A DNA stretch of 64,000 nt from Phallusia mammillata. Its lineage: Eukaryota. The translations under genes were made by a program, and so were the position numbers. Position 1 is the first letter of the stretch, and every line of letters begins with the position of its first letter. The stretch spans positions 1,984,001 through 2,048,000 of the forward strand of contig OZ281494.1 of assembly GCA_965637545.1 (NCBI GenBank), read 5' to 3'. Below the pieces are notes generated by a model that was given only the letters and a program-made list of their open reading frames with translations, was not told where the DNA came from and ran no database searches. Shown here one piece after another: positions 1,461 to 39,138 of this stretch.

Positions 1461-3428
1461 TCAATTACGATAAATTCCATTTACATCTTCGAAAACTGGA
1501 TCAGTTCGTTGGATTGGAACAACATAACCGTCGTCGTTACGTTTTGAAACTGCATTCACATCCACAGAATCTACAAAACATGAAACTAATCAACACTTTT
1601 AACACCGTCAAATAATAAACATTACTTTACCGTGATTCGGCGGTGCTGGTGGAAAATTTGTGTAAGCTTGTTTAGGAGGTGGTTGATCTTGTAGATGTTC
1701 GTTTTGCGTCGAAAGTGAAATCATGGAGTCGTTTCTGTACATATTTCTGGTTTTGAACTAAGGTTGAAAACTTTGCAAATCATTGGGGATTTATATGTGC
1801 AATTTAGAAATGTTTTTATTTAAACTTCTACAAATAGCTAACCGTGTTTTGCTTTTGTTTTTGTAGTTTCGCCACAACAGTAGGATGAGCAGTAAACAAA
1901 ATACTGCAAGAACACCAGCAGCTGATGCTATAACGATGTTATCAGTTGTGGAAAGACCTGCAATAATCAGTAACTAGTATCAGTGTAAGGTTTGTGTTAG
2001 TTTGTGGTTGATGTATAAAACTTGGTAAAAATTAAGTTAAAACACATGTTTGTCATTGTCAGTATTGTGGACTAGTGTTAACTTTAATGTATGTTTTTAT
2101 TGTTACGCTAGATGCCGTCCCTGTAAAGTGACTTCACATGTAGATTGTCCTGGGTTCGAACTCCGTGACGAAAAAAAAGCGCGCATCGTGTTGGGCAGGA
2201 ACTTGGCCGAATGAACCGGCTCGCCTAAATCATGTACAGACATAAAAAAACTTGATCTGGATCTGCTCTGGGTTCAAAAAAATACACCCCACCGCGTCCT
2301 AATAACTGTAATACCTGTTTTGTAATGTATACATATAAGGAAAACATGGCAAGAATCAAAGTGTTTGTAATTTGCTTTATCAACACAGCAATTTTCAGTC
2401 TGAAATTTACTAGCAAAAGCAAGCATTGTTTTGATTGAAACTAAACAGAGTGTCAATACCTGAAGCACAAGCTGTGCCACCGGGAGATGGCGTTTTTCCT
2501 GACATTGTTGTTGCCTGGATCGAGTTGTTTATTAAACCACTACTCGTTTGCCTATCGTACTGAGATGTGCTTGACTCCAAAGCTGCAAATAATATGTTTT
2601 TAACATCAATGGACAACACAATTGTTTTTTTTTACATTGTTATTTATCACAGTCTTTAAAGCTATTATTTATTTCGAAATTAATTACAATTTTGTTTACG
2701 GTTATAGTTATCAACAAATGACAATTTTCAGCTATAATGCTTTGATTCTTGCTGTTCAAATGATAATTGTACCTGGGTTAGGCGTTGTGCTGATTTGTGT
2801 TTGTTTTTCTATTGCTTCACAATCAATAAACTGGTACGACATCACAGCAGAATATAGTATAAAATCGGTTGTAATTATGGGAGGCCACATCACAGATTCT
2901 TGTATGACATTTTTACACAATTCTGGTTTGGTATCTCCAGGTTTGCAGTGCGTCAAATTGGAACCAGACTTCGCAAAAATGCGACAGAAAGGACCCGATA
3001 GCCACCATTTCCTGCCTAAGTCGAGAATTTTTTTGTATTTTGCAAGGTACTTTAGATGATAAAGACATACCTGGGTTATCTGGTGTATAGAAGTTGTAAT
3101 GATTACTAATGGATCCTACACTTGTGGATGTTAAAACCTTAAACACCATCATCAGATTTGTTCGGTTCGGAGGATTGTAATCAAAAACCCAATTGCATTG
3201 CACTGTTGAAAAATCGGAAGCATGTGAAAAATATCCGGAAGTGTTTGAAGTGGGGAGTCGGATGCAATAACTTGATGTGGGACTGAACGAAACTTAAAAT
3301 ACAAGTTTGAAGTAGAGAGGATTTAACTATTCAACGAAATGTTATGCAAATAATAACTTACCACTTGCAATGACGCAAATCGTCACAGCAAAATGCTGGA
3401 CAGTGTTTAAAGCGGTTTTACCTAACAT
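1461..3428 (-). CDS. Receptor family gene A1: 7-exon type I membrane protein (~327 aa), 6-Cys ectodomain, class-A tail
   Basis: Exons 3428-3362, 3292-3071, 3015-2773, 2582-2460, 1957-1843, 1734-1631, 1570-1461, all GT-AG, total 984 nt, open. Leader MLGKTALNTVQHFAVTICVIASVSFS; domain YCIRLPTSNTSGY...CNW...FIDCEA; TM IVIASAAGVLAVFCLLLILLLW; tail ...NDDGYVVPIQRTDPVFEDVNGIYRN*. Confidence 0.85.
2145..2285. repeat. Dispersed SINE-like repeat (also ~8205-8315, ~11932-12070, inverted at ~59270-59385)
   Basis: Shared core ttgggcaggaacttggccgaatg...acagaca-A-run-gatcggga next to a GGTTCGAAC B-box-like motif. Confidence 0.5.
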
Positions 3429-3930
3429 TGGTTAGCTGTGCACTAGAAAATAAAGCAGTGATCATCAAAAACGACCAATCATTGAAGTCGATGGAAGGCA
3501 TACGACCACAACTATCAACATCCCCAAATGTCAACAACAATGAATTTAAAGAAATTAATGCGTAGTAAACATTTTTAGTTTAAACAATAATGACAACTCG
3601 GTAACAATAAATAATACTTCATATTACACATAATAAAAATGTTTTGGAGGTAGAAACATACAACTTTTTAGTTTGATCTTTTTTTTATTTAAAATTGTGA
3701 TTTTAACAATGTTAAACACAAAGTGGAAAGTCAACTAAATTATTATCTTAGTGTAAATAATAAGTTGCAACAGCAAGTGTATTTTTTAAATTGTTCTTAA
3801 ACGGAAGCTTTATTATGCAGAACTTGAGAAAATTTGAGAAAATACAAATTCAGGCGTAAAATACGATCTTGAGAAATTTTGTTGTTTTGTTTGTACTCGG
3901 CTTAGCAAACTCTGGGGCCAATATAACACT

Positions 3931-5935
3931 TCAATTACGAGACAATCCATTTAAATCTTCGTAAAGTGGAGCAGATCGTTGGATTGGAACAAGATATCCG
4001 TCGTCGTTGGGTTTTGCAGCAACGACCACATCGACATATTCTACAAAACATAAAACCCATCACTGTTAAAACCTGGAAACAATAAACAGCACTTTTACCA
4101 TGTTGATCTGGATGAAAGCTTGGATTTTGTTGATCTTGTAGTTGATCGTTTTGTGTCGTTAGTGAGATCATCGAGCCGTTACTGAAAAAAATGATTGTTT
4201 TAAAGCTGGGTCACTACTTTCCAAACACTTGAGGGGTTTAAACTGTTTGTTTTAGAAAAACGTTTCACTTGTAATGCGTATAAAATCTCCCACATAAAAA
4301 ACAACTTGTCCCACTCAATATACGGAGAGGTTTTGTTTACTTGCTAGTAACATTATGACAACAAACCTGGATTTGATCTTGTTTCGACACAATAGTATGA
4401 TGAGCAGTAAACAAAATACGGCAAACACAGCAGCAGCTGATGCTATAACGATGGTATCAGTCGTAGAAAGACCTGAAACTATTAATAACTGTGGAAATGA
4501 CAGTGTGATATTTGTGTTAATCTATGGTTAATTCATATGATTTTTCAACGATAATAATGTAAAAAAAACTATGTTATAGCATTATTTGTCGTCTACACTG
4601 TTGTTGACGTAAGCTAATTTGTTATTTTAATATGCGTTTGGTTACAAAGTATTAGTATCAGAAAAATGTAGCAACCATAGTGTTTGTAACTTGCTTTATC
4701 AACACAGCAGTTATCACAATGATTCAAGTCCGAAAATAGAGTGCCAATACCTGAGACGCAAGCTGCGCTACCAGGAAGTGACGTTGTTCCTGTTTGCACT
4801 GAGTTGGTGATGTTGGATGTGTTTGGTATCAAGATATCTGCACGAACAAAATATGTTAAAACAAGATCAATTAAGACAATCAATTAGCAGTCCGAATCTT
4901 ATTCTGACTAAGTCGTTTTTCATTTACCACTCATTCATAAAACCCAAATAATTTACAGTTTGTTTAATGATAATTATCGCGCAAGTCGCCAAGATGGTTG
5001 GCGCAACCGCCTTGTGTTCACAAAGTTGTGGTTTCTGATCGTGGTCGCGAGCTGCATTGCTCCTGCCTAGTAGTATCCGACGGGTTGGACTGAATTAAAT
5101 TGAAAAAAAATCAAACAAAAACGGATTTAACGGACTTGCGATAAAACAGGCGCATGACGCATTCGGGCGTTGCACGCCTACCGAAGATAAAAGACGAAAA
5201 AACAAACAAATCTTAATACACAGCAATGCTTTGCCTCTTGTTAAAATAAATATCTCACCCAGGGTCAACGCCGTGCTGGTTCTCTTCTCAGTCACATTTG
5301 CTTCACAATCAATAAACTGGTATGACATCACAGCAGAGAAAGCTGCAAAGCTGGTTTTTAATATGGGAGGCCACATCACAGATTCTTGTATGACATTTTC
5401 ACACAAGTCTGGTCTCTTATCTCCAGGTTTGCAGTTCTTCAAGCTGGAACCAGACTTTACATAAATACGACAGAATGAACCTTTCAGCCACCACTTTCTG
5501 CCTATGATGAGAAAATAGTCATAATGTTTTTATGCCGACCTAAGGTACCTAATTTATCTGCTATGTACCTGGATTATCTGGTGTATAAAAGTCATACTTA
5601 AGATTAAACAAACCAACAGTGCCCGATTGCAAAACCCTAAACACCATCATAAGATTGGTTCTGTTGGGAGGATTGTAATCAAAAACCCAGTTGCATTGCT
5701 CTGTTAAAATATCGGAAGCATGGACGAAATATCCTGAACTGTTCGAGGTTGGAAGTTGGATGCAATAACCCGATGCAAGGCCAAATGAAACTGAAACACA
5801 AATATAAAGAAAAAAAGTTTAAAATATAAAACAACGATTTGGAATGCTAAATAAGTATGACTTACCACTTGTAGTAATGCAAATAGTCACAGCAAACATC
5901 TGAACAGTGTTTAAAACGGATTTGGGTGACATCAT
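3931..5935 (-). CDS. Receptor family gene A2, intact, class-A tail
   Basis: Exons 5935-5866, 5790-5569, 5501-5259, 4837-4751, 4472-4367, 4181-4099, 4040-3931. Domain exons are 222/243 nt as in A1. TM IVIASAAAVFAVFCLLLIILLC; tail HEYVDVVVAAKPNDDGYLVPIQRSAPLYEDLNGLSRN*. Confidence 0.85.
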
Positions 5936-7608: not shown

Positions 7609-9623
7609 TCAATTTCGATTAATTCCATTCAAATCTTCGTAAAGTGGAACAGGTTGTTTGATTGGAACAAGATAACCGTCGTCGTCGGGTTTCGAAACTA
7701 CATCCACATTAACAGAATCTACAAAACATAAAACTCATTATCTATCTTGACATAATTAAAGGATAAATATTAACTTACTTTTACTCTGCTTTGGTGTTGC
7801 TGGTGGAAAATTTGTGTAAACTTGTTTCGGAGGTTGTTGATATTGTAGTTGATTGTTTTGTGTCGAAAGTGATATCATGGAGCCAATTCTAAGCGTAGTT
7901 ATGCTTTTAAACTAAGGTCAAAACTTGACAATTCCTCGGAGGTTTAAAGCGTGTATTTAAGAAAGCTTTCAAATTAACTAGGACGAAAATCAACTACAAA
8001 CCTTGCTTTATGTTTGTTTTTCCAGTTTCGCCACAATAATATGATGAGCAGCAGACAAAATACTGCCAGCACAGCAGCAGCTATTGCTATAACGATGGTA
8101 TTAGTTGTGGAAAAACCTGAAATAATGTCTTTGTGGTAACTGTAATTTATGTATTTACTATTGCGCTAGATGTCGTCCCTGTGTTATGACGACAATTGCT
8201 GTAGCGCACAGGGAAACTTGGCCAAATGGTCCAGCGCGCCTGACCCAAATACAGACACAAAAAAACTGATCGGGATTCGTCCCTGAGAGTAACCTGGGTT
8301 CGAACCCCGTGAAAAAAAACCAACAAAAACACGGTCGGTGAGTTCATGACACTAACTTCCCAGCATTTGTAACATCTGTTTGTAGCGTATGCTTACCAGG
8401 GAAATGTTGCAACATTTTAAGTGTATGTAACTTGCTTTATCAACTCTTTTCCGCAAAACAAATCTTTTTCGGCTTGAAACCAATAGAGTGTCAGTACCTG
8501 AAATGCAAGCTGTGCTGCCGTAAGATGACGTTTTTCCTGACATTGTTGTTGCCTGAAATAGGTTCGTGGTGTTTAGCAAACCACTACTCGTTTGCTTATC
8601 GTACTGAGATGTGCTTGTCTCCAAAACTGCAATTGGAATGAAATATGCTATACAATATCATACGCTATCGTCACCAGCTGCTCTGATGAAATCTTATAGG
8701 TCCAAACAGTGTGTACTGTTAGCAGCTTATGTTCTGGTACGATTGTTTTATATTTATACAACATATATGGGGAAAAAGATTTAATTCTATTGTAACTAAA
8801 TCTTTTTTTACCACAACAAGCAGCAATTTTTTTTAATACCAAACAATTTCGTTTTCAGTCTTAGTGTTCAACACAGCACAGTTTTTAGCTATAATGCTTT
8901 GAATCTTGCTGTTCAAATAAATATAGTACCTGGGTTAGCCGTTGTGCTGGTTGTATTTTCTTTGCCATTTGCTTCACAATCAATAAACTGGTATGACATC
9001 ACAGCAGAATATTGTGCAAATTCGGTTTTGATCATGGGAGGCCACATTACAGATTCTTGTATAATATTTTCACACAAGTCTGGTCTCTTATCTCCAGGTT
9101 TGCAGTTCGTCACATTGGAACCAGACTTCAAATAAATACGACAGAAAGAACCCGATTGCCACCATTTTCTGCCTAAGTCGAGAAATTAATCAACTTTTTT
9201 TGTATTCCACGTGTTTAAGGTTTCAGAATCAGTCACGTGTTTTATGACTTACCTGGATTATCCGGTGTGTAAAAGTTGTAATGATGTGCACCAAATCCAA
9301 CAGTGCCAGATTTTGAAACCTTAAACATCATCAGAAGATTTGTTCGGTTTGTAGGATTGTAATCAAATTCCCAATTACATTCCTCTCCTGAATAATCGGC
9401 AGCATGTACTAAATGTCCTGACTGTTCGAAGTTGGAAGTTGAATGCAATAACTTGATGCAAAGCCGAAAGAAACTAAGTCGCCGACATAACAAAGTAAAG
9501 TTTTGAACAGATTAAACGATTTGTTATGCAATATATGCAATAAAATCATGACTTACCGAATGTAATGACGCAAATCGTTACAACAGAATGCCTAAGAGTG
9601 TTTAAACCGCCTTTTCGCAACAT
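7609..9623 (-). pseudogene. Receptor family gene A3, 1-nt deletion in exon 2
   Basis: Exons 9623-9557, 9473-9253 (221 nt vs 222 in paralogues), 9172-8930, 8626-8498, 8116-8002, 7888-7785, 7718-7609. A missing base near 9420 gives TAG at 9409-9411. All other exons are intact; tail DDDGYLVPIKQPVPLYEDL. A sequencing error is possible. Confidence 0.75.
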
Positions 9624-9787: not shown

Positions 9788-12700
9788 TTGTAAAATGATA
9801 TCGCTTTCTTGTTACGCACTTCCATAAATCTGATGACTTGAAAAAGTAAACCCAAACCAATTGCCTTCTACCATTTGTTCTGTTTCAAACCCTCACAACT
9901 AAATGTAAACTACTTTGCTACATAACCATTGGATGTACTGTGGGCTAATTTTTTACCGAAACACCGTACATGCAAATTTATTGTCGTTCATACGTCACAG
10001 TGTTAAAACGTGATTTGAGCGATTTAGTGCGTAAGATCTACTTAGTTGCAAAACACCTAAAGTTTCCCGTTTAAGCCGGGTTTCTCAGTTGAAACGTACG
10101 GCGTTAAACTTTGCGTAATTATGTTATGAAAGCAACTTGTCTTTCAAAATATCACAAATTAAACACAATGACCGACCTACGCAAAAGCTCGTGTGCAATT
10201 GAAACGTGCTTCTAACAAGCAACCATTGGAAATTTCGTGGAGTAGGTTATTGCAACAAGCTAACACGCTTCACACGGCATTGTACACAAATTTCTTTTCA
10301 TATAATGTATTGGTAGAATGCTATAAAAAGCTTTGCTCGTATGCCACAAGACATTCAGCAATTTTCTCATTGTGGGATATCCCATTTTCTTAAGGGGTGG
10401 GTTGCAAATTTTTAATTCAAATTGATTACGAGTAGATGAACATTGACTGATTTATTCGACATTATCCCACACGATCTTTGTCCACATTGGAACCAAGGAG
10501 TACCGTTACTTATTTACTTTATTCGATTTGCTTGAAGCTGAATTTATGGCCAAACTGTTTACTTACCTCAGTGATTCTGTAACTAAAGGTGATTTGCTGT
10601 TATCATTTTTTTCGATTTGGCACTTTACTTAATTTCATGGCCATAGCATATCTGGACTATAATTTAAGTGAGTTTTTCTTTTGCATTTGTTGGTGAACAG
10701 GGGATGCACCGGGTTCTAAGGGATAATTTAAGGGACCACAGGTCATAAAAGGTGACTTGAAGGCGGGTCCGATCTATGAAAGGTTGAGAACCAGTAGTCA
10801 AACGTATTTAGTTTGGTTGTAACAATGATTGCATTAGTTATAAACAAAATACGATGACGTTATCTATTGCGATGCTATTAAGAACGATTTTTTCCAGTTA
10901 CATTTGAAGGATTTGATGTCATTCACTCTTCTCTATTGTAAATCTATTGAATAGGAATTGTGATTTTATTTTTGTAATAAATGTAAGTCGTCACAGCAGG
11001 TATTGAAAAAGGAAACAAAATAGGATCAACAAGAGTAGTCAACACAATGTACAAACTCAAATATTCATATGTTAGCGTAAATCGTCAGTTGTATAAGTAG
11101 GCTTATGTATGCGTCTTTAATGTCTATTGAACTGAGTCTGAAAAATAGAAACTAAGAAACAAATAGTTTTATAAATGCGTGGTTGAGAAATTGGATTATT
11201 TCGTTTAACTTTCAAATGTGAGAAAACTTTTTGATGACGTAAACACTTCAATTACGATAAATTCCATTTACATCTTCGAAAACTGGATCAGTTCGTTGGA
11301 TTGGAACAACATAACCGTCGTCGTTACGTTTTGAAACTGCATTCACATCCACAGAATCTACAAAACATGAAACTAATCAACACTTTTAACACCGTCAAAT
11401 AATAAACATTACTTTACCGTGATTCGGCGGTGCTGGTGGAAAATTTGTGTAAGCTTGTTTAGGAGGTGGTTGATCTTGTAGATGTTCGTTTTGCGTCGAA
11501 AGTGAAATCATGGAGTCGTTTCTGTACATATTTCTGGTTTTGAACTAAGGTTGAAAACTTTGCAAATCATTGGGGATTTATATGTGCAATTTAGAAATGT
11601 TTTTATTTAAACTTCTACAAATAGCTAACCGTGTTTTGCTTTTGTTTTTGTAGTTTCGCCACAACAGTAGGATGAGCAGTAAACAAAATACTGCAAGAAC
11701 ACCAGCAGCTGATGCTATAACGATGTTATCAGTTGTGGAAAGACCTGCAATAATCAGTAACTAGTATCAGTGTAAGGTTTGTGTTAGTTTGTGGTTGATG
11801 TATAAAACTTGGTAAAAATTAAGTTAAAACACATGTTTGTCATTGTCAGTATTGTGGACTAGTGTTAACTTTAATGTATGTTTTTATTGTTACGCTAGAT
11901 GCCGTCCCTGTAAAGTGACTTCACATGTAGATTGTCCTGGGTTCGAACTCCGTGACGAAAAAAAAGCGCGCATCGTGTTGGGCAGGAACTTGGCCGAATG
12001 AACCGGCTCGCCTAAATCATGTACAGACATAAAAAAACTTGATCTGGATCTGCTCTGGGTTCAAAAAAATACACCCCACCGCGTCCTAATAACTGTAATA
12101 CCTGTTTTGTAATGTATACATATAAGGAAAACATGGCAAGAATCAAAGTGTTTGTAATTTGCTTTATCAACACAGCAATTTTCAGTCTGAAATTTACTAG
12201 CAAAAGCAAGCATTGTTTTGATTGAAACTAAACAGAGTGTCAATACCTGAAGCACAAGCTGTGCCACCGGGAGATGGCGTTTTTCCTGACATTGTTGTTG
12301 CCTGGATCGAGTTGTTTATTAAACCACTACTCGTTTGCCTATCGTACTGAGATGTGCTTGACTCCAAAGCTGCAAATAATATGTTTTTAACATCAATGGA
12401 CAACACAATTGTTTTTTTTTACATTGTTATTTATCACAGTCTTTAAAGCTATTATTTATTTCGAAATTAATTACAATTTTGTTTACGGTTATAGTTATCA
12501 ACAAATGACAATTTTCAGCTATAATGCTTTGATTCTTGCTGTTCAAATGATAATTGTACCTGGGTTAGGCGTTGTGCTGATTTGTGTTTGTTTTTCTATT
12601 GCTTCACAATCAATAAACTGGTACGACATCACAGCAGAATATAGTATAAAATCGGTTGTAATTATGGGAGGCCACATCACAGATTCTTGTATGACATTTT

Positions 12701-13259
12701 TACACAATTCTGGTTTGGTATCTCCAGGTTTGCAGTGCGTCAAATTGGAACCAGACTTCGCAAAAATGCGACAGAAAGGACCCGATAGCCACCATTTCCT
12801 GCCTAAGTCGAGAATTTTTTTGTATTTTGCAAGGTACTTTAGATGATAAAGACATACCTGGGTTATCTGGTGTATAGAAGTTGTAATGATTACTAATGGA
12901 TCCTACACTTGTGGATGTTAAAACCTTAAACACCATCATCAGATTTGTTCGGTTCGGAGGATTGTAATCAAAAACCCAATTGCATTGCACTGTTGAAAAA
13001 TCGGAAGCATGTGAAAAATATCCGGAAGTGTTTGAAGTGGGGAGTCGGATGCAATAACTTGATGTGGGACTGAACGAAACTTAAAATACAAGTTTGAAGT
13101 AGAGAGGATTTAACTATTCAACGAAATGTTATGCAAATAATAACTTACCACTTGCAATGACGCAAATCGTCACAGCAAAATGCTGGACAGTGTTTAAAGC
13201 GGTTTTACCTAACATTGGTTAGCTGTGCACTAGAAAATAAAGCAGTGATCATCAAAAAC
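9788..13259. repeat. Second copy of 1-3472
   Basis: Same sequence and identical ORF translations. Confidence 0.9.
11248..13215 (-). CDS. Receptor family gene A1', apparently identical copy of A1
   Basis: Same sequence as 1461-3428 at offset +9787; ORF-track peptides are identical. Confidence 0.8.
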
Positions 13260-13857: not shown

Positions 13858-15447
13858 TCATGTTTTGTACAAGGCATTGTATACAACTTCCTTTTCAAAT
13901 GATGGATTGGTAGACTGGTAAAGTTCGTTGACCACAATTTCCCTACACTGCGGTTCCGAAGTGTTTGCTGTTAACGTGTCGGAAAAACTCTTTGTTGTTT
14001 TCAATTTCCTGTGTAAGCAATACAGAAAAGTTGATACTTCATACTAATACAACCAGATTCTGTTGATATTATAACAACTCTAGCTTATATTGTATTAAAC
14101 CTCTACACTTTAGCTTTTAGTAAAACAAGTTTTCTGTAGAAGCAATGTGCTGCAATAGGTTACGCTGTTTTTTGTCAGGTTTAGGGCGTTATATTTGAGG
14201 GTGTTTCATTGTGTCAAATATTTACCTGATTTTGAAAAGCAAAACCAAGATGACACAACATGCAAAGAGAAGCAACACTGCAAGCACCAAGACGACCCAT
14301 ATAAATAGTGAGGCTTCCTCGGTGGTTTGACCTGTCAACAAGTTATTTTTATTCACTGCAAGTGATTTCACGCTGTACAGGCACGTTGAGTGTTATACAA
14401 TGCATAGGTAACTTGTTCTAAAAGCAAGAAGATGGAAAATGCGCAAAGTATTTTATAATTCGTAATTGCGACTTTATTGTTTCTACAGTAAAGTAATATC
14501 ACGAGTGTGCAAATAAGGATTATACATTTCCCTGCAAGAGTGTTCAATGAATAGAGATTCCATGTTAATGAAATTATCACAATACCTTTATAGTTTGACA
14601 CGTCGTCATAAACTGACGTTGTTCCTGTCATTGTAGTGGTGTATTTTAGAGTAAAGTTTTTCCGCCCAGCAAGTGTTCCATTGTTACGTCGAGATATATT
14701 GGACGAAACAACCACTGAAAATCCCGGCAAAATATTTGTTTTATTCTTCTCGTGATTCAAATTCATTTATTAATGATTTTAATTACCTGCGTTTTGAGAT
14801 GCTTCTATTAAAGTATTTGATTCGCAGTCAATAAACTGATAAGACATCACAGCTGAGAAAAGTTTAAACCAGGTGGTAATTTCGGGTGGCCAGCTTAAAG
14901 CACCTTGCATGTTATTTCTACATAGCTATCATCTGCTATCTCCAACTTTGCAGTTGGTCATATTTGAACCTTCTTTAACGTAAATGAGACACCAAGGAGC
15001 CTTCTGATAGAACTTATGACCTGAAAATGTATGATAGAATTAATTTGTTGTTTACTTTTCTGCTAAAAGTTGTTCAAAAACTTACTTGGTCTGTCTGGTA
15101 ACCAAAAGTTGTAATGATTATCAACATATCCCACCGTGTCAGATTTCACAACCTTGAAAATCATCATAAGATTTGTTCGGTTTGGTTGACTGTAATTAAA
15201 CCTCCATGAGCAATAATGCCCACAATATCCAGCAGCATGTACCATGAATCCTGAACTGTTTGAAGTTGGAAGTTGAAGGCAATAACTCGTTGCCAAGCCG
15301 AAGAATACTGAATAAATTTGATGCAAATTTTAAAATAGTCAACTTTTCTATTTCAACGCATGAAAACTAAACTTCTTACCACATACGAAGATGCAAACCG
15401 TTTTGACAAACTTTTGGACAGTATTGTGAACGCATAATACTCGACAT
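13858..15447 (-). pseudogene. Receptor family gene B, disrupted, with ITIM-type tail
   Basis: Exons 15447-15380 (68 nt, out of phase with exon 2), 15307-15086, 15020-14787 (in-frame TGA TAG at 14931-14926), 14714-14586, 14331-14226 (TM LFIWVVLVLAVLLLFACCVILVLLF), 14008-13858 (tail EIVVNELYQSTNPSFEKEVVYNALYKT*). Confidence 0.8.
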
Positions 15448-20900: not shown

Positions 20901-21740
20901 TTCAAGCTGGAACCATACTATGCATAAGTGCGACAGAATGAACCTTTCTGCCACCACTTCCTATCTACGATAAAAAAATAACAGATTTCCGTTATGGTTA
21001 GCAAGATAAAGTAACAGATAAAAACCTGGGTTATCCGGTGTGTAGAAATTGTAATGGTTTCCCCAAAGTCCAACAGTGTCAGATTGCAAAACCTTAAAAA
21101 GCATCAAAATATTTATTCGGTTCGGCGGATTGGAATCAAATTCCCAGTTGCAAAGTTGCCCATTATATCCAGTTGCGTGTATCAAGTACCCTGAGCTGTT
21201 TGAAGTGGGAAGTCGGAGGCAATAACTTGATGCAAAGCTGATGAAAACTAAAACAAAATATTTAAAAATAAACACTTAAATACAGATGGAGCAGAAAACT
21301 ATTTCCTTACCACTTGAAATGATGCCAATATGTTTAAAACCTTGCTGAACAAACATTGTCAAATCGCTAACTTAAAACAGAATAGGAAAGTCAAATCTTA
21401 CGAAGTCGTCAAAATGCTGTAAAAAGCGAGTTTGTAACAAACAACTTAACATGCTTATTGACATTAAATCAGAAAAGTCAAGTTTGTTTACACTACTCTT
21501 TTCGTCCTATATGTACTAAGTAAGAAACAGCCTTTTTGTTCAGTAGACTAACTTTGTTTCTGCCGAACTAAGCAAGTAAAAGAAGAAAACTTCTCTACAG
21601 CAGCCAGCAAATAGTGAGAGCACAATAGGTTACTTTGTTATTACGTGACGTGACCATTGTGAGACTTTTCGCCCTGTTTGAAAAGCGTTTCTGTTTGTTT
21701 CAAAACGTCGTATTTTGTCAAAGAAGCATAGATGATGAGT
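17300..21740. repeat. Segmental duplication, copy 1 (copy 2 at ~24260-28700; partial third copy at ~31475-32860)
   Basis: Offset ~6930-6965. The intergenic 18030-19600 stretch is visually near-identical to 24990-26560. Confidence 0.85.
19980..21356 (-). pseudogene. Receptor family gene C2, premature stop in exon 3
   Basis: Exons 21356-21311, 21247-21026, 20964-20734, 20526-20413, 20337-20232, 20109-19980. TAG at 20920-20918 where paralogue C3 has AAG. Tail ...NKLYHS...ETVYNTLFNR*. Confidence 0.8.
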
Positions 21741-23069: not shown

Positions 23070-24938
23070 CTAAGGCAGTTTATTAAAATCCATGTACTCC
23101 GGTGTAGGTTGTTGTATTGGGGCAAGATAATCAACGTTGTCGTGTCCTGATGGAAACTCCACAGTGGCATAGTCTACAAAACACAGAAGAAATTAACTGC
23201 AATATTGGCTCCAGAATAAATATCGCTTTTACTGTATTGTAACGGAGGCGATTGAAAACTGGATGGGGTTTCCTGGTTTTCACCATTGCTGTGCTGAAAA
23301 GGATGCTGTTTATTTTGCTTTGTACTATTCCTTGTCGGTAATTGGACGGAGTCTGAATTTCTAAAACAACACTCATATGAGTACGACATCAAGTAGTAAA
23401 ACAACACAAACTATTACCAAACCTGGATCTATTTTTGTTTTGTCTGTTTCGCCACAATAGTATGATGAGAAGGATACAAAATATCGCAAACACAGCAGTA
23501 GCTGTTGCAATAACGATGGTGTCAGTTGTAGAAAAACCTAAAACGCAAAATTTGCTTGATGGTAATTTGTTGTAATTTGTAGATTTAGACTTTCGCTGAT
23601 TAAAAATAGGTTGCTATCTAAGTTAAGCAAATACAACCCGTAGATACATTATAATATCATCTCCTCTTTAGAACATAAGTGAATTAAATTTTGAAATACT
23701 TTTAATCAAACTAGCATTTGTAACCAAAAGTAGTTCAATTTAAGAACACATGCAGAAAAACAAATTGGTAAGACCTTTGTCACAAGTTGTGCTGTCGAAA
23801 AGTGACGGTGTTCCTGCCGTAGTTGTTGTCTGGGCTGGGTTACTGGAATTTTGCAAAAGTGTACTTGCAGCAAAAACATCTATAAAATAAAATAATTTAA
23901 AGGAGTTTAATTACATGCATATAGCTAAATATGTGCATCATTAAACAATCCAATTTATTAAAAGGTAAAATAAGTTAAAATGGGGATGTTCTAAATAAGT
24001 ATGGATAACGATTTCAATAATCGTAAAATAATGTCACTTCATAGCGACGCACTAATATAAGAAGGAAACAAATTTAAAAGGTGCAGGAAAAAAACAGCAG
24101 AACAGATGAAATTTAGTGACGCACAAAAAGTTACAGATAGAAGGATTTAAGCGATAATAAGAAACGTATCCCGACGCAAGTTAAGTACAAGAGCAGTCGA
24201 TCTCTCGAGAAGTCAGTGAAACGTTTGCTAGTACACTCACACGGACGAAGGGTGAAAAACATTCCTACGTCGTCCACTGAAACAAACTTACCGATATTAC
24301 GATCAACATTCGACATTTTCGCCTCGCAGTCAATGAAATCAAACGCCATTACAGCAGAAAATAGCGCAAAGTCTGTTTTGATCACGGGAGGCCACATCAC
24401 AGATTCTTGTATGACATTTTCACACAAGTCTTGTCTCTCATCTCCAGGTTTGCATTTCGCCAAGCTGGAACCAGACTTTACATAAATACGACAGAAAGGA
24501 CCCGATTTCCACCATTTCCTACCTACGACAATAACACAATAGATATTCTGTTTTGTTGGCAAGATTATGTAGCAGATACATACCTGGGTTATCCGGTGTA
24601 TAAAAACTGTAATGGTTTGCCGTATGTCCAACAGTGTCGGATTGCAAAACCTTAAACATCAGCATAAGATTAGTTCGGTTGGGAATATTGTAATCCAAAT
24701 TCCAGTTGCAATGGTGCCTAGCATAACCAGTCGCGTGTATCAAGTACCCTGATCTGTTTGAAGTGGGAAGTCGGAGGCAATAAGTTGCTGCAAAGCTGAT
24801 GAAAACTGCACCAAAACATCAAAAAATAAACACTTATATACTGATGGAGTAGAAAAATATTCCCTTACCACTTCAAATGATGCAAATACGTTTAAAGCAT
24901 CGCCGCTGAACAGCGTTTAAGCTAAGGAAAACAAGCAT
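23070..24938 (-). pseudogene. Receptor family gene D1: C1-like ectodomain on class-A-type TM/tail, stop in leader exon
   Basis: Exons 24938-24869 (TGA at 24875-24873 where C1 has TCA), 24805-24584, 24522-24292, 23879-23775, 23537-23423, 23360-23233, 23173-23070. Tail QYNYATVEFPSGHDNVDYLAPIQQPTPEYMDFNKLP*. Confidence 0.78.
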
Positions 24939-26886: not shown

Positions 26887-28282
26887 TTATTGGTTGTACA
26901 AAGCATTGTACACAGTCTCCGTTTCGAACGTTGGATTATTTGAGTGGTAAAGTTTGTTCACCACAATTTCTTTATCATGCGATTCGTTTGACGATTTGTC
27001 TCCAGTTTTGGGAGATCTGTCTTTTTTTCTGCATGACACAAAATTATAATAAGTTTTTCAAAATATGTGAAGATAGGCATCAATAAATTCTAATTTCTAT
27101 ACACTGCATTTTATCCCATGAAAGTTGCGTTAGCCTTCTTCATGGATTACCTTATTTTGACCAACAAGTACACAACAACTGTAGATGTCAACATCAGAAA
27201 AACAGCCAGAACCACAGAAATCCATAGAAATACAGACGGCTGTGGCGCAGTTGGACCTAGTGATAATGAATAATCTTTTTAAGTTTTGCCTCGTGAAAAA
27301 AGTTACAGTAACACCGTTTGCATGAGTCACCAGAAACTGCCGGTGTTCCTGTCATTGTTGTCGTCGTTTGGGTTTTCTCCGTTGGGTTTATCCATCTTTC
27401 AGCAGCTGAGTTGTTATGCGTTGATGTGTTCGATGTTACCACCACTTAAATAAAACAAACGTTTCAGGCGTTAAAGTGCAAATATTTTACCACTAAACTA
27501 GGCGAAGTGTTAAATTAAAATCCAGTTGTCCGCTCCAAATGAACAGTCACGGTTTTGTGCTTAAACATTATGTACCAGACAGAAGTTTTTAATAAGAAAT
27601 TTTGGGACAGGCGGCTCGTAGCTAAAAACTAACAAACGTCATCCACTGAAACCACCTTACCAATATTGCGATCAACATTTGATACGTTCGCCTCACAGTC
27701 TACAAAATCAAACGACATCACAGCAGAATATAGCGCAAAGTCAGTTTTGACCACAGGAGGCCAGCTCACAGATTCTTGTATGACATTTTCACACAAGTCT
27801 GGTCTCGTATCTCCAGGTTTGCAGTTCTTCAAGCTGGAACCAGACTTTGCATAAATACGACAGAATGAACCTTTCTGCCACCATTTCCTGTCTACGATAA
27901 AAAAATAACAGATTTTCGTTATGGTTGGCAAGATAAAGTAACAGATAAAAACCTGGGTCATCCGGTGTGTAGAAATTGTAATGGTTTCCCCAAACTCCAA
28001 CAGTGTCAGATTGTAAAACCTTAAAAAGCATCAAAATATTTGTTCGGTTCGGAGGATTGGAATCAAATTCCCAGTTGCAAAGTTCCCCATTATATCCAGT
28101 TGCGTGGATCAAGTACCCTGAGCTGTTTGAAGTGGGAAGTCGGAGGCAATAACTTGCTGCAAAGCTGATGAAAACTATAACAAAATATTTAAAAATAAAC
28201 ACTTAATTACTGATGATCAGAAAACTATTTCCTTACCACTTGAAATGATGCCAATATGTTTAAAACCTTGCTGAACAAACAT
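26887..28282 (-). CDS. Receptor family gene C3, intact (~286 aa), NxLY/ITSM-like tail
   Basis: Exons 28282-28237, 28174-27953, 27891-27661, 27444-27331, 27256-27151, 27028-26887, total 861 nt, open. Tail EIVVNKLYHSNNPTFETETVYNALYNQ*. Confidence 0.85.
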
Positions 28283-29712: not shown

Positions 29713-32252
29713 CTAAGGCAGTTTATTAAAATCCATGTACTCCGGTGTAGGTTGTTGTATTGGGGCAAGATAATCAACGTTGTCGTGTACAGATGGAAAC
29801 TCCACAGTGGCAAAGTCTACAAAACACAGAAGAAATTAACACCAATATTGGTTCCAGAATAAATATCGCTTTTACTGTGTTGTAATGGAGGCGGTTGAAA
29901 ACTGGAAGGAGTTTCTTGGTTTTCACCATTGCTGTGCTGGCAAGGATGCTGTGTATTTTGCTTTTGACTCTCCCTTGTCGATAATTGGACCGAATTTCTA
30001 AACAACAGTTATATGACTACGACCCCAAGTGGTAAATCAACACAAATTCTTAACAAACCTGGAATTAATTTTGTTTTGTCTGTTTCGCCACAACGATATG
30101 ATGAGCAGGAGACAAAATATGGCAAACACAGCAGTAGCTGTTGCAATAACTATGGTGTCAGTCGTAGAAAGACCTAAAACGCAAAATTATCGTGATGGTA
30201 AATTTGTTATAGTTTGCATAATTAGACATTTGCTGATTAAAATGGTTTGCTATCTGAGTTAAGCAAATACAACTCGTGGTTACATTGCAATACGATCTCT
30301 CCTTCAGTTTAAAATTTATAAAACTTTTACTCGAACAAGGAATTGGAACCTGAAGCAGTTTCATTTTAGAACACAAGTAGAGAAACATATTGGTAAGACC
30401 TTTGTCACAAGTTGTGCTGTCGAAAAGTGACGGTGTTCCTGCCTTAGTTGTTGTCTGGGCTGGGTTACTGGAGGTATGCAAAAGCGTACTTACAGCAAAG
30501 ACATCTATAAAAAAATAAGTTAAACAAGTTTAATTACAAGAATATAGCTAAATATGTGTATCAATAAACACAAAAAAATAATGTTAAAATAGTATGATGA
30601 TGAAGCCAAATTTATAGGCAATAAACTGGAAAAACAATTTATTAAATCTTAAATTCAGTTGAATTGGGGATGTTCTAAACCAGTATGGAAAACTATTTCA
30701 ATAATCACAAAAATAGTGCTTCTAAGCTATGACTTGCCGTTGTTGTCGTGCATAACTTTTGTCGTAATATTCGCCTCACAATCTATGAACTGATATGACA
30801 TAACTGCTGAGTAGAGTGTAAACTGTGTTTTAAATTCAGGTGGCCAATTTACAGATTCCTCGATAACCCGGTTGCACAGGTTAGACCGAGTTTCTCCAAC
30901 TGAACAGTTCCTTGCGTTTGATCCACTGTGTACATACATGCGACACCATGGGATTGTCTGGCTGGACACTCTTTTACCTATGATAGACGATTCGTTACTA
31001 CATGTCAAATGTTAACAATGTGGTAATGTGGTAACAGCCAACATTTAACAAAGTTTAACCCGTTCTTAAATGTAACTTATTGACTAAAAAAGAAAACGTA
31101 GTTAAAGTTTACAACAAAAAATCGTAAGTTACTTGGATCGTTGGGCAGCCAAAAGTAGTCTTGTATTGAAATTTTGCTCATATATTGGGCTGCAAACACT
31201 TTCAACACCATCATTAGGTTGCTTCTGTTCGAGATGGTACTGTTGAAGACCCATGTGCATGTAGCGCCCGGATAAGCGCCCAAATGAACCAAGTAACCGG
31301 ATGAATTTGAAGTCTTCAGGGTAACACAGCTTTTATTCGCTGATGCCAGTACTCCTGTGAAATAAACTTTTTAGAAACACACATAACAATAGGTTCCGTT
31401 TAGCTTTTCCGTTTAGAATGCAATACCATATGTCACTTTATAGCGACCCACCGACACACTATTATAAAGAGAAGCGAAGTGTTAAATTCAAATCCAGTTG
31501 TCCGTTCCAAATGAACGGTCACGGTTTCGTGCTAACATTATATACCAGACAGAAGTTTTTAATAAGAAATTTTGGGATAGGCGGATCGTAGCTAAAAACT
31601 AACAAACGTCATCCACCGAAACCACCTTACCAATATTGCGATCAACATTTGATACGTTCGCCTCACAGTCCACAAAATCAAACGACATCACAGCAGAATA
31701 TAGCGCAAAGTCCGTTTTGACCACAGGAGGCCAAATAACTGATTCTTGTATGACAATTTCACACAAGTCCGGTCTCTTATCTCCAGGTTTGCAGTTCGTC
31801 AAATTGGAACCAGACTTAACATAAATACGACAGAAAGGACCCGATTGCCACCACTTCGTTCCTACGACAACAAAATAACAGATCTTGGTTATGGTTGGAA
31901 AGATAAAGTAACAGATAAAAACCTGGGTCATCCGGTGTGTAGAAATTGTAATGGTTTCCCCAAACTCCAACAGTGTCAGATTGTAAAACCTTAAAAAGCA
32001 TCAAAATATTTGTTCGGTTCGGAGGATTGTAATCAAATTCCCAGTTGCAAAGTTCCCCATTATATCCAGTTGCGTGTATCAAGTAACCTGAGCTGTTTGA
32101 AGTGGGAAGTCGGAGGCAATAACTTGCTGCAAAGCTGATGAAAACTAAAACAAAATATTTAAAAATAAACACTTAAATACTGATGATCAGAAAACTATTT
32201 CCTTACCACTTGAAATGATGCCAATATGTTTAAAACCTTGCTGAACAAACAT
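29713..32252 (-). CDS. Receptor family gene D2: two tandem ectodomains (C-type + E-type), class-A-type tail
   Basis: Exons 32252-32207, 32144-31923, 31861-31631, 31354-31133, 30977-30738 (GC donor), 30504-30400, 30173-30059, 29997-29876, 29816-29713. All are phase-compatible and open. Tail HNFATVEFPSVHDNVDYLAPIQQPTPEYMDFNKLP*. Confidence 0.72.
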
Positions 32253-33392
32253 TGTCAAATCGCTGACTTAAAACAGAATGGGAAAGTCAAATCTTACAAA
32301 GTCGTCAAAATGCTGTAAAAAACGAGTTTGTAACAAACAACTTAACATGCTTATTGACATTAAATCAGAAAAGTCAAATTTGATTACACTACTCTTTTAG
32401 TCTTATGTAGCCTACTAAGTAAGAAACAACCTTTTTGTTCAGTAGACTAACTTTGTTTCTGCCGAACTAAGCAAGTAAAAGAACGAAACTTCTCTACAGC
32501 AGCCAGCAAATACTGAAAGCACAATAGGTTACTTTCTTATTCAGGACGTGACGTGACCATTGTGACACTTTCGCCTCTTTGTTAATTTTAGTTCCAGGAA
32601 ACTTATCTTAGTCGGGTTGAACCAAACCGTGCCATTCGGGTAACACAACAAGTCGGTGAGAACAACACATCACAAAGACATATTTTTTTCCATCCACAAT
32701 CTCCCCCCAAACCGTAATCTAAAACAACCATGCCGACAGTTATATATATTTTGTTGAGCTTTACATGGAGAATTAGGTAAATCGGTGGGGGATTAATTCA
32801 AAAACTAAACAAATTGGAATATTGTAGCAAAAGTATGCGACATTTGGCTTGGTTTATACAGCGTAAAAGTTATTGCAAGGTAAGTAAAAAAGTTGCACTC
32901 ATTTTAATCATCTCGTATTACATTTCGCTGTCTACAGTTTTTGCAAAAGATTTGTTGTATGTTTTTTTTTAATAACTTCTGGATCCTCAATAACGCAAAT
33001 GAGAAAACCGTCAAGGAAAAGTAGACTACCAAGAAAACCAGAAAGTACATCAAAAGACCAGAAAGTACATCAAAAGACCCGTTAAAGACCCACTTTTATG
33101 AAGGGAAGCAAACAAATGAAAAAGGTGCTGGAAAAAAACAACGGTAGAGATGCAATTTGGTGACGCACAAAAATTTACAGATCGAATCAATCAGGCGTCA
33201 ATAAGAAACGTATTCCGACGCAACTTATGTACAAGAGCAGTCGATCTGTCGAGAAGTACGTTGCTCAAAAAGTGAAACGTTTGCTAGCACATTCAAACAG
33301 ACCTGATCCACCGATATAAGTTAATGCTGGTAAATTAATCCACACAAATGAATTACATCTTACACTTTTGGGATCACCCGTAGCATCTAGCA

Positions 33393-33810
33393 CAGTGGTT
33401 CCCAAACTTTTCATGTTTTATTTAAAACGATCACGTTGCTATTATTTCGAGGGCTCGCGGTCCTTAAGCCTAAATGTGTATTTCATAAAAACAAAAGTTG
33501 ATTGCAGGATTTTAGCTAGTTATGCAAAATTGCGCATAACAATCATTCAAAGACAGCATGTGACATCACAAACAGGACGAAAACATTACGATTGTGCGCG
33601 AACAATTGCATTTTTGATAGTTGTCATTCAATAAAGGCCATTGTTTAGCAATGGAGACAGTCGATTCTCAATTCTACTTTGATATAAATTTATTTAGTGG
33701 CACAAACTGACGACAAATAAGATTATAGAATTACTTTAACCGCTTCGCGGTTCCCCCAAATTGCCTCCCGGGCCCCTAAAGGACCGCGGACCTCAGTTTG
33801 GGAGCCGCTG
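33393..33810. mobile_element. hAT-type MITE
   Basis: TIRs CAGTGGTTCCCAAAC / GTTTGGGAGCCGCTG; perfect 8-bp TSD ATCTAGCA. Confidence 0.85.
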
Positions 33811-33918
33811 ATCTAGCAGAAACTCAAAACAGCTACAAGGTTGTTCAATTTGCAGTTATGTGCTAACTTCCACATAACAGGGTTCACACGATAAATCTTC
33901 TATTCTGAGCGTACTCAC

Positions 33919-33955
33919 CGCAAAGCAGAAACATTAATGTTATCATCGATATCAT
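33919..33955 (-). CDS. Alternative (E-type) leader exon for D2
   Basis: MISMITLMFLLC+G|gtgag, 37 nt, paralogous to the gene E leader 39138-39102 and phase-compatible with exon 31354-31133 (GVLASANKSC). Confidence 0.6.
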
Positions 33956-35711: not shown

Positions 35712-38700
35712 TTAACCCATTGGTGCGTGGTACAGGTCATTGTACACGGTTTCTTTCTCTGGTGGCAGATCGGACGATTGGTAAAGTTCGTTGTTGACCA
35801 TTCCATTCGGTTGATCAGACGTGACTCCCCTCTTAACCGGAACACTGTAAACGTCATTTGGCGAACCACTCTGTGTTGTTGAGTTCTTCAACTTCCTGCA
35901 GTACATAGAATCATAAAAATAGTTATAAACTACTGGCGTGTGGATTAAATTATCTTGATCTAAATGCAAAGATATATTGTGCTAAGTCATTTTTCATGTT
36001 GTAATCTGTAACGACGCTTTTTCACACATTAACAGAATAAAAAAGGACAGTATGAGGCTCAAGGTAGAGCTGTCTTAATGTGAAACATAGAAGCGATGGT
36101 ATGTTCCTCAAATTTGTACCATTTTTCAATAAACTTTCAGTACTTGGAGGCAAATATTCTCCATATTTTTGCACCGGTAAACAGACATGGCAAGATAGTT
36201 TTAAAATAAAAAACTACTTTTAAAATAAAAACGTATAAAATCATGCAGTATTGATTCCACATTTTGCCCAGTAGTTTACCTGTTTTGAAACAGCAAGAAA
36301 ATCAATCCTGCCCAGCTGACCACCAGCAAACAAGCAAGGGCAATGGACAACCACAAGTACGTTGCTCCAGCAGTTGTTTTATCCGTTGCTCCAGTTACTA
36401 CCGTAATAGGACTACCTATACAATTGTAAAACATATTTGCTAAAAGGTAAAAGGCAGACGATAATACGATAATAAACAATACTCGGTTTGTGTGCAGCTA
36501 AGTTTATCTTAGACATTCAATTATAAGACTTAGGATACTACAGGATGTTGTAACCAAAAAGTTCCTCTGCTGCATTTACTGCTTATGGATACTTCCATAG
36601 ACAATTGAAGAAGGAAGTAAATGTCATGTAGAAATACAAACATCCTGGTTACTCTGAAGCTGTGGCAACTTGATATATAGAGCACCAAATAGTGGCTATA
36701 ACGTCTAAAATTTTGTTACCTTATTGGCTCATATATGTAAACCAATATGGAGTGCATCAATAACTAGTAACAGCCAACTAGAAACCACAAACACAGGAAA
36801 CAGGTAACGTCATATCAGCTTGACTTTAGACACGTCACACACAATTTACCGTCCACGGGTGTTTTCGATGTACTTCCTGGTGAACTGGTTGCAGCCGGTT
36901 CAGTAGTTTCATGACTTGCGACGGTTGTTGTGATGTTAGAGTTATTTGTAGATGATCCAGGAGCGATAACCACTGCACATAACAATAATATGTTTGAAAT
37001 AATTTCACAAAAAATCATTTTTCCAACCGTCATGTCAGTGCATCAAGTTTGCTTCAATTTAAAGCTGTATCCTAAATACAAATTGTCGGGAGAGTTAAGG
37101 TCCACAAAATATTAACTTGTAAAAGAGTCAAACTAACTAAAATGCAGTTAGAACTTGGTTGTGCATTATAACTATTTGTTTGGACCTTTTGGCACTTTGG
37201 GTAAAAAGTTTTTACTAAAAACTATAACAAGCAAATACTTGCCATTGTCTTGCATGACGTTTGACGTCACATTCGCTTCACAATCAATAAAGTGATATGA
37301 CATCACTGCTGAGTAGAGTGCGAATTTTGTTTTAAATTGAGGTGGCCAAGTTGCAGATTCCTCGATAACCCGGTTGCACAGGTTGGAGCGTGTTTCGCCA
37401 ACTAAACAGTTTGTTGCGTTTGATCCGCTTTGCACGTAGATGCGACACCATGTGATTATTTCGCTGGATACTCTTTTACCTGTGATTTCAAAACATCCTT
37501 TCAAAACAGTTGCTAAAGAAATAAATTTGAAAAAAGGGGGTAATGTACAAGTGTTGTGGTGACTGCTAATGGTGTTTAAAGCCATGATAAAATGATAAAC
37601 TCTTTTGCGTCACTATTTTTCCTATAGTATAATCAAGTGTTACAACATGCAATTTTAATCTAACGCATAAGCATCTAACGCATAAGCGCCGACACGTTAT
37701 CGCAAGCGCCCCTCATTGAAATTAATTTTTTCTCTAATTTAACATTTTTTGTCGAATTCTGGTGAATGTCTAAAAATGTATCTAAGTAAAGGAGAGCAAT
37801 TGCTCTCTTAAGTCAACAATTGTCTAAATTTAGACGTTAATGTATCAAGTGGTATTTCCATACTATCTGCCGTTTTGCTCTATTTCGAACAAACAGAATG
37901 CTACACATGATAAAAGTGTGATGGATGCGTGGCTAAGCGGGGATTTTATACATCGCAAAGTGTTTCAGGTTTTATTGCACAGTACATAATTTATACTTAT
38001 ATGTACACAATTATTTAATATAGTAGGTTAGCGTCGAAATTTCGCACCATTAACTTGATACAACGGTAAGTTACTTGGATCGTTGGGCAGCCAAAAGTAA
38101 TCATTATGATTCCATAATTTGCCAGTATATTCGGCTGCAAACACTTTCAACACCATCATTAGGTTGCTTCTGTTCGACACGGTATAGTTGAAGTCCCATG
38201 TGCATGTGATACCAGAATAATCGCCCAAATGAACCAGGTAGCCGGAGGAGTTTGAAGTCTTCAGGGTGACACAGCTTTTATTTGCTGATGCAAGTACTCC
38301 TGTGAAAATCAGCGATTTTAAAACAAACGTAATCAATTGGTTCCGTTGAGCAGAAAACTAAAAGAGGTTGAAACGTTGCTGTTATAGTTAACTAAGTGGC
38401 AATTAGTTTCTAGAAATTGTGGTAAAAGAACATGCTATACGATATGTTACGTCATATCCCCAAACTACCATTACGAAGGAGAGGAAACTATTCAAACGTT
38501 GCAGGAAACTTTATTGGTCCAAGCCTATTAAAGTGGCAATACTTACAAATAGTTGCGAGACTGTTTGTGTTTCTTTACTTGTTGAATTATTTTCATCTTA
38601 GGTATACAATGCGTGGTTCTACATATTCTTAGCACGACAATATAAACCAATGATTGTGTATATCACAACAATTTAGCATTCCTGCTATCGTCAGGTAATA

Positions 38701-39138
38701 CAAAACCAATAGGAGGGGTTTAACTTGGTAACGGACAACATAAAAAGCGGCACAAAGTTACAATTAAAAGCAATAACAAGAAACCCATCCTGACACAACA
38801 CATACACACGAACAAGTCAAACGTTTGCTCGCACATTCAAGGGCACCCGACCCACCGAGTTAAATTCTCTAACCCTGAAGTATTGCTAGGTTATTTACAT
38901 ACCGATATAAGTTGGTAAAATACCACAAAACTTGCGCTTTTCACTTTTAGAAATATCTTTGCAGTTTGCAACTAGCCCAGGAAATAGAAATACAATCAAA
39001 CTGTCACGCTAAGCTGCTTAAAGCTTGTGCAATTTATAGTTATGTACAAAACTTGTAGATACCAGAAGCTTACACTATAAATGTACTATAAACGTACTCA
39101 CCGCAAAGCAAAAACAGTAACGTTATCATCAATGACAT
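35712..39138 (-). CDS. Receptor family gene E, intact divergent member (~313 aa)
   Basis: Exons 39138-39102, 38299-38075, 37479-37243 (GC donor), 36972-36850, 36415-36280, 35895-35712, total 942 nt, open. Signal MSLMITLLFLLCGVLASA; TM YLWLSIALACLLVVSWAGLIFLLF; tail DVYSVP...NNELYQSS...ETVYNDLYHAPMG*. Confidence 0.85.

Follow-up and report, generated by a model that had tools for sequence, protein, structure and literature searches.

A tandem array of putative receptors with CUB-like heads and recombined tyrosine-motif tails in the ascidian Phallusia mammillata

Multigene clusters in which the same extracellular head is carried on different cytoplasmic tails are a hallmark of innate recognition in vertebrates and, as recently found, of allorecognition in Botryllus. 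To our knowledge, the paired-receptor clusters described so far all use immunoglobulin (Ig), lectin or sushi heads. Here we describe a stretch of 64,000 nucleotides from the ascidian Phallusia mammillata (hereafter the window; C1:1984001-2048000 of the 240-Mb assembly GCA_965637545.1, contig OZ281494.1, with C1 coordinates referring to the whole contig) in which the same genomic logic appears on a head that is CUB-like. The genes in question resemble those of the KIR, LILR/PIR, SIRP, Ly49, Botryllus FF/FcoR and Hydractinia Alr clusters in their tandem arrangement, their pseudogenes and their near-identical heads on different tails; they differ in having a CUB-like head rather than an Ig, lectin or sushi head, an uncharged transmembrane (TM) segment, and tails that only resemble the ITIM (immunoreceptor tyrosine-based inhibitory motif) and the hemi-immunoreceptor tyrosine-based activation motif (hemITAM). 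In Botryllus, Fester/FcoR receptors combine Ig-superfamily and sushi domains with ITIM and hemITAM tails, and the two motifs are swapped within FcoR (PMC12582321). By architecture, the nearest vertebrate proteins are DCBLD1/2 and CDCP1, which share a CUB-type head, one TM helix and tail tyrosines of the YxxP type; in DCBLD1/2 these motifs bind CRKL after phosphorylation by Fyn/Abl (PMC6029619). DCBLD proteins carry CUB, LCCL and discoidin domains and CDCP1 carries three CUB-like domains, whereas the Phallusia genes form a large tandem family with a single CUB-like head and no sequence relation to either.

The explanation that we consider probable is that the window holds one end of a cluster of ascidian-specific, CUB-like type I membrane glycoproteins, in which ligand-binding heads are joined to phosphotyrosine tails with differing outputs. 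Such proteins would act as surface receptors that bind a ligand and signal through phosphotyrosine motifs.

The window is AT-rich (GC about 0.35), and its positions 1 to about 39 kb form a tandem array that repeats about every 2.5-4.7 kb. Splice donors within the repeats read in reverse complement, and the array genes therefore lie on the minus strand. Searching with the exon peptides of copy 1 (tblastn) and modelling the splice sites placed 11 co-oriented genes with 12 ectodomain modules at 1461-39138, in agreement with a reading of this DNA made earlier from its letters alone (the sequence-only reading), which had also proposed the 222-nt exon 2 and the phase-1 ectodomain introns that we recovered. 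AG/GT borders and phase 1 were located for the ectodomain exons of 12/12 modules; exon 2 is 222 nt long in 10 of the 12 (the exceptions, copies 3 and 12, are given in Table 1), and exon 3 varies from 231 to 243 nt. In modules 10 and 12 the intron after exon 3 is of the GC-AG kind (donor G/GCAAGT; 30738 and 37243, minus strand), whereas all others have GT there. Full gene models are exons joined by script for frame checks and substitution counts, and homology searches were run exon by exon.

Spliced frames are open in seven genes, namely copies 1 (identical to 4), 2, 6, 9, D2 and 12, and predict proteins of 286-327 aa, except that the two-domain form of D2 reaches 468 aa; all exon combinations of D2 keep the frame, the one-domain product being 314 aa. 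Every open model begins with a hydrophobic N-terminal leader, followed by a domain of about 150 aa that is encoded by two phase-1 exons (exon 2, then exon 3) and has six cysteines at fixed positions. There are 4-8 N-glycosylation sequons in each ectodomain, and the stalk that follows is mucin-like, 45-66 aa long and with 35-42% Ser/Thr/Pro. Hydropathy plots show a single leader and a single strong TM segment per protein, beyond which lies a tyrosine-bearing cytoplasmic tail of 45-85 aa. The architecture of leader, six-Cys domain, Ser/Thr stalk, single TM helix and tyrosine-motif tail was thus read correctly from the letters, as was the presence of pseudogenes: four of the 11 genes (copies 3, 5, 7 and 8) are disabled.

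Table 1. Positions of the receptor genes and associated features in the window
Feature	Positions	Strand	Description
Copy 1	1461..3428	minus	intact; 7 exons; 327 aa; type I tail (..NDDGYVVPIQ..) with three tyrosines
Copy 1 exons	3428-3362, 3292-3071, 3015-2773, 2582-2460, 1957-1843, 1734-1631, 1570-1461	minus	canonical AG/GT borders
Copy 2	3931..5932	minus	intact; 7 exons; 305 aa; type I tail (NDDGYLVPIQRSAPLYEDL)
Relic type II tail exon	6838-6954	minus	between copies 3 and 2, behind a type I gene; 41% identity to the copy 9 tail exon; 47-aa open frame
Copy 3	7609..9623	minus	type I; exon 2 of 221 nt, 1-nt deletion causing a frameshift; may be a pseudogene or reflect an indel in the assembly
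Copy 4	11248..13215	minus	copy 1 letter for letter
Copy 5	13858..15424	minus	pseudogene; two in-frame stops in exon 3, no in-phase start; type II tail with VVYNAL
Copy 6	16618..17983	minus	intact; 6 exons; 295 aa; type II tail (VVNELYHS..NNDLYNPI)
Copy 7	19980..21356	minus	type II; stop at codon 105, in exon 3 (20920-20918)
Assembly gap (N)	21741-21945		sole N run; intergenic; flanked by the copy 8 3' end and the copy 7 leader
Copy 8	23070..24938	minus	7 exons; type I (..VDYLAPIQQPTPEYMDF); TGA at codon 22, in the leader exon
Copy 9	26887..28282	minus	intact; 6 exons; 286 aa; type II tail (VVNKLYHS..TVYNALY)
Copy 9 exons	28282-28237, 28174-27953, 27891-27661, 27444-27331, 27256-27151, 27028-26887	minus	matched by RNA contigs
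D2 locus	29713..33955	minus	two-module gene, type I; stalk, TM and tail exons run down to 29713
D2 leaders	33955-33919 (far); 32252-32207 (second)	minus	
D2 module 11	32144-31923, 31861-31631	minus	
D2 module 10	31354-31133, 30977-30738	minus	GC donor
Copy 12	35712..39138	minus	intact; 6 exons; 313 aa; exon 2 of 225 nt; GC donor after exon 3; tail with YSVP and two NxLY

Recombination has joined head cassettes, each comprising promoter, leader and two domain exons, to two unrelated tail cassettes, and the breakpoints lie in intron 3. Copies 6 (type II tail) and 8 (type I tail) share a DNA stretch of 92.7% identity that begins more than 400 bp upstream of the leader and stops 19 nt past exon 3; beyond that point they are unrelated. 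In copy 9 (type II) and module 11 (type I) the shared stretch, at 92.5% identity, reaches about 160 nt into intron 3. For copy 12 (type II), the leader and head exons are 77-86% identical to those of module 10 (type I), and the two heads 85% identical. The tail regions, for their part, cluster by type (copy 8 with D2 at 86.7%, copy 6 with copy 9 at 78%). Three head pairs (6/8, 9/11 and 12/10) therefore each stand over a type II and a type I tail, the hallmark of paired receptors. Within the genome, both tail types are confined to the window's cluster and to a cluster at 6.54-6.56 Mb.

The type I cassette (copies 1-4, 8 and D2) consists of a TM exon and two tail exons, with the constant motif [D/N]xxY[LV][VA]PI. 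In copies 2 and 3, and only there, YEDL follows seven residues after this motif, giving an ITAM-like YLVP-x7-YEDL with proline at +3. The type II cassette (copies 5, 6, 7, 9 and 12) has a TM exon and one tail exon, with the motifs VxN[EK]LYxS and (V/T)VYNxLY; NxLY occurs twice in all intact type II copies. The canonical ITIM ([SIVL]xYxx[IVL]) is found in pseudogene copy 5 only, as VVYNAL; copies 7, 9 and 12 have TVYNxL, and copy 6 has neither. The tail of copy 12 carries both YxxP[IV] and NxLY, as does that of P0006, a homologue from the ascidian Clavelina lepadiformis, which indicates that the motifs are old and conserved and that the two types do not divide cleanly into activating and inhibitory. 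In P0006 the two kinds read DPYELPI (YxxPI) and NVLYQPI (NxLY, and also a canonical ITIM, VxYxxI), whereas in the window they are split by tail type.

The genes of the cluster multiply by tandem duplication and decay, four of the 11 being disabled, and heads and tails have been exchanged as cassettes through intron 3. These features suggest how the receptors might work. The CUB-like head would bind an extracellular ligand, and phosphorylated tail tyrosines would recruit adaptors with SH2 or PTB domains, the candidate docking motifs being YxxP[IV] in type I and the two NxLY, or (V/T)VYNxL, in type II. Because nearly the same head stands on different tails, one ligand could elicit different outputs, which is the logic of paired receptors.

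What the head is related to was addressed by sequence and by structure. Among 1.84 billion representatives, an exon-3 profile matched only seven proteins (best E 2e-8). Two are full-length proteins of Clavelina lepadiformis, and the other five are fragments without a name that stem from environmental or assembly contigs; among annotated animals there was no match other than Clavelina. A homologue search from Clavelina P0004 returned only P0004 itself and one fragment. The Clavelina matches are "uncharacterized protein" at NCBI, one of them being automatically named "CUB domain-containing protein" in UniRef, and all six cysteines align between Clavelina and the window copies over the whole domain (exon-2 and exon-3 peptides). 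No characterised family gives a full-length match in the profile, Pfam or PDB sequence searches. Pfam gave no Ig or sushi signal, and no family, for either the exons or the full-length Clavelina proteins, and neither the exon profiles nor P0004 drew a relevant match from the PDB sequences.

We modelled the fold on residues 22-180 of Clavelina P0004. A shallow alignment that covered the N-terminal half only gave a model with a predicted local distance difference test score (pLDDT) of 56, which was not used. The deeper alignment (A7, A8) added the window exons, 20 exon peptides from other clusters and seven bridging paralogues; MAFFT alignments without the bridging rows (A3, A5, A6) stacked the exon-2 peptides on the C-terminal half. 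In the bridging paralogues (L001 and L002 at C1:16.09-16.11 Mb, L003-L006 and L008) the intron between the domain exons is free of stops and in frame, so that one frame of 176-215 aa runs across the domain; isoforms of these seven genes that retained the intron would keep the frame. With the deeper alignment, which is dominated by Phallusia copies, the AlphaFold model of P0004 reached a pLDDT of 80 and a predicted TM-score (pTM) of 0.77.

An exhaustive VIA-align comparison of this model with 48,161 PDB representatives returned CUB domains in all of the top 19 places (Z 7.0-8.3, 93-101 residues at about 3 A), including those of TSG-6, Gpr126, cubilin, neuropilin, enteropeptidase, C1s, MASP, spermadhesin, PCPE-1 and Kremen. 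In the ESM-Atlas, CUB proteins take the first two rows (TM-score 0.55-0.56), and the language-model neighbours are CUB clusters. The sandwich can be superposed on solved CUB domains (TSG-6, Gpr126, cubilin, neuropilin, C1s/MASP, spermadhesin, Kremen, Neto2 and BAI3) with Z 7-8.3, about 95-100 residues fitting at about 3 A. The spacing of the first cysteine pair is also CUB-like and is followed by C-x-W, C1-x22-C2-x-W being invariant in the family. The family domain differs in being about 150 rather than 110 residues long, in having six cysteines rather than four (its second half has four where CUB has two), in a poorly modelled insert in the middle, and in giving no Pfam or hhalign signal. Our reading is that the ectodomain is a very divergent CUB-like beta sandwich, enlarged to about 150 residues and with two additional cysteines; its homology to CUB is plausible, not demonstrated. 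The sequence-only reading had seen a domain that it could not recognise and took to be of a different kind. That it is not Ig, sushi or EGF stands, whereas a new fold does not, given the CUB-like sandwich in the model.

The family extends well beyond the window. With 76 matches to the exon-3 profile, the genome has at least 76 domain copies, grouped in three clusters. The largest spans about 190 kb, with about 50 of the matches within C1:1.83-2.02 Mb, and the window forms its right-hand end; the other matches fall at 6.54-6.59 Mb and 16.08-16.69 Mb. Clavelina belongs to a different ascidian order, and its LOC143461689 and LOC143462528 (XP_076815627, CAK8680512, CAK8680516) have the same leader, six-Cys domain, Ser/Thr stalk, TM segment and tyrosine tail in a co-oriented tandem array, at about 20-28% identity to the window copies over the whole domain. 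In the 21.6 kb around Clavelina P0011 there are seven co-oriented genes without Pfam matches, at least five of which match the family profile. The family is thus ascidian-specific and present in at least two ascidian orders, which bears out the proposal that this is a lineage-specific family of single-pass receptors. Full-text literature searches found no account of CUB-headed, tyrosine-motif receptor clusters in tunicates (the string "CUB" in a Botryllus review occurs in journal DOIs only), and the family is undescribed, being named nowhere beyond automatic annotation. The CUB fold, together with rapid birth and death in a lineage of broadcast-spawning hermaphrodites, might suggest recognition at the gamete surface, either in sperm-egg binding or in self-sterility, by analogy with the spermadhesins, which consist of CUB alone. 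However, signalling tails are present here and absent from spermadhesins, and the known ascidian self-sterility genes belong to other families; we consider a gamete role improbable.

The ectodomain is under purifying selection, with pairwise ratios of non-synonymous to synonymous substitution rates (dN/dS) of 0.21-0.48 over the domain. The loop hypervariability claimed by the sequence-only reading is only relative: there are three patches, around TGYNGELCNWEF, SDTVGVWGNHY and KSGSSLKNCKPG, in which the corresponding ratio of proportions (pN/pS) peaks at 0.82, 0.89 and 0.77 in 12-codon sliding windows pooled over seven pairs, against 0.12-0.3 in the framework. Neither the pairwise nor the sliding-window tests gave a signal of positive selection, no sliding window exceeding 1. 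Variation is therefore concentrated in a few patches, and diversifying selection is not indicated by dN/dS or pN/pS.

Purifying selection would also suit scaffold or adhesion receptors like DCBLD or CDCP1, in which a CUB co-receptor head would be coupled to kinases of the Src/Abl type and adaptors of the Crk type in morphogenesis or epithelial signalling rather than in non-self recognition. The CUB-like head, single TM helix and short tail agree with this, as does YxxP, the one motif that all type I tails share with copy 12 (DDGYLVP, VDYLAP, DVYSVP) and present also in Clavelina P0006 (DPYELP); YxxP is the motif by which DCBLD1/2 bind CRKL once phosphorylated by Fyn/Abl (PMC6029619). However, LCCL and discoidin domains are absent, as is sequence similarity to DCBLD or CDCP1, and dozens of fast-turnover tandem copies with swapped tails would be unusual for housekeeping co-receptors. 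We regard such a role as possible but doubtful.

Expression was examined in four sequencing runs of one study, which we took to be RNA and in which 7-10% of the sampled words of 26800-34100 are present. Contigs from these runs were compared with the 6,000 letters of 26850-32849. They skip five stretches with CT..AC ends (27029-27150, 27257-27330, 27445-27660, 27892-27952 and 28175-28236) that are exactly the five modelled introns of copy 9, removed as predicted, in three to four samples. Although the RNA label of the runs is a guess, intron-less contigs in that many samples show processed transcripts of copy 9. D2 has almost no contig coverage. One contig, from run X2, joins exon 2 of copy 9 (28174) to the leader and 5' untranslated region of module 11 (32207), 4 kb upstream; it could represent an allele, gene conversion, a read-through splice or a chimeric contig.

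The copy 9 contigs differ from the assembly at 16 coding positions, of which 12 are non-synonymous and 4 synonymous. Such an excess might be expected of immune or allorecognition receptors, in which polymorphic heads would distinguish self from non-self and would be paired with inhibitory and activating tails on blood or epithelial cells. The 12:4 ratio is, however, near neutral expectation, and the differences may include cross-mapped paralogues. The tandem cluster, its pseudogenes and the change in copy number would all fit an immune role, as would one head on two kinds of tail, the (V/T)VYNxL of type II, which resembles an ITIM or an immunoreceptor tyrosine-based switch motif, and the acidic-GYxxP of type I, which recalls a hemITAM; allorecognition in Botryllus uses clusters of ITIM/hemITAM receptors (PMC12582321). 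By contrast, the low dN/dS, the absence of any sliding window above 1, the confinement of the sole canonical ITIM to a pseudogene, and TM segments and tails with neither a charged TM residue nor a canonical ITAM all speak against such a role. Of the paired tails proposed from the letters alone, the near-identical heads on two unrelated tails are real, whereas clean ITIM/ITAM pairs and charged TM residues are not found. By analogy with the known clusters, we hold an immune or allorecognition function to be possible but doubtful.

A more specific proposal, that ascidians evolved paired-receptor recognition of self/non-self or of microbes on CUB-like heads, with tails shuffled through one intron and in convergence with KIR/Ly49 and Botryllus FcoR, seems to us slightly less probable again. 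If a recognition role proves true, paired receptors would have originated independently in the closest invertebrate relatives of vertebrates; if it proves false, what remains is nevertheless a receptor family of large size, undescribed, whose phosphotyrosine motifs are clear and testable.

Part of the array is repeated without a single difference. Positions 1-3472 of the window equal 9788-13259 at 100% identity, as part of a perfect tandem duplication with a unit of 9,788 bp; the unit occupies C1:1977685-1987472, beginning 6,315 bp to the left of the window, and the duplicated span is C1:1977685-1997260. It follows that copy 4 duplicates copy 1, and that genes lying just outside the window on the left recur as copies 2 and 3. 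A perfect duplication reflects either a very recent event or over-expansion of the assembly, and the distinct gene sequences in the window number ten rather than eleven. A further, near-identical segmental copy lies about 45.3 kb to the left (about 45.27 kb), inside the receptor cluster.

The single run of N in the window is intergenic and is crossed by no exon or frame; copy 7 starts (21356) about 385 nt downstream of it, and copy 8 ends (stop at 23070) about 1.1 kb upstream. The low-coordinate flank of this gap matches the paralogous interval from D2 to copy 9 collinearly as far as the gap edge, whereas the other flank (506 nt, 21946-22451) is without counterpart in that otherwise collinear interval, so order, spacing and continuity over the gap are unproven. 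The 506-nt segment may be an insertion or a mis-join.

The perfect 9,788-bp duplication, the near-identical copy 45.3 kb away, the four disabled genes of 11 and the gap with its non-collinear flank could be taken to mean that the array is largely dead or artefactual, a product of over-expanded assembly and pseudogenes without current function. Against this stand the correct splicing of copy 9 in four samples, dN/dS well below 1 between diverged copies, seven open frames, and the conservation of domain, motifs and array in Clavelina. This explanation appears very improbable.

Several observations weigh against our preferred explanation, a cluster of CUB-like receptors with phosphotyrosine tails. 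With respect to the head, the exon peptides have no match to the Pfam CUB family (PF00431), the best hit being AGRB_N, a CUB-like region, at E 0.1, and the full-length Clavelina homologues have no Pfam CUB match at E<=1. When the family profile (A8) was aligned by hhalign with ten canonical CUBs of the same genome (A9), the probability was 0.35% and E 0.17, the short stretch aligned being the C-x-W ... x-D-G region. The protein modelled is a homologue rather than a window protein, a Z of about 8 is in the middling range by the tool's own scale, and Foldseek against the PDB yields weak GOLD and CUB rows only. With respect to signalling, the TM segments of the window models lack Lys, Arg and Asp, and the tails are not clean ITIM/ITAM pairs. 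Clear RNA support is limited to copy 9, with nearly none for D2, and some of the genes may be assembly duplicates.

To the right of the receptor cluster, the window contains open frames of other kinds. Kinase-like frames at 45880-47219 and 49666-50160 (plus strand) adjoin the cluster, and one of them reads ..LSYLHSKSIVHNAVRTDNI.., without the usual HRD aspartate. Multi-pass frames resembling Dispatched/Patched occupy 53140-55140 and 61857-62696 (both minus strand) in a GC-richer stretch (0.43-0.45). A 279-aa frame at 53140-53979 is repeated at 61857-62696 with three residue differences, which points to another recent duplication.

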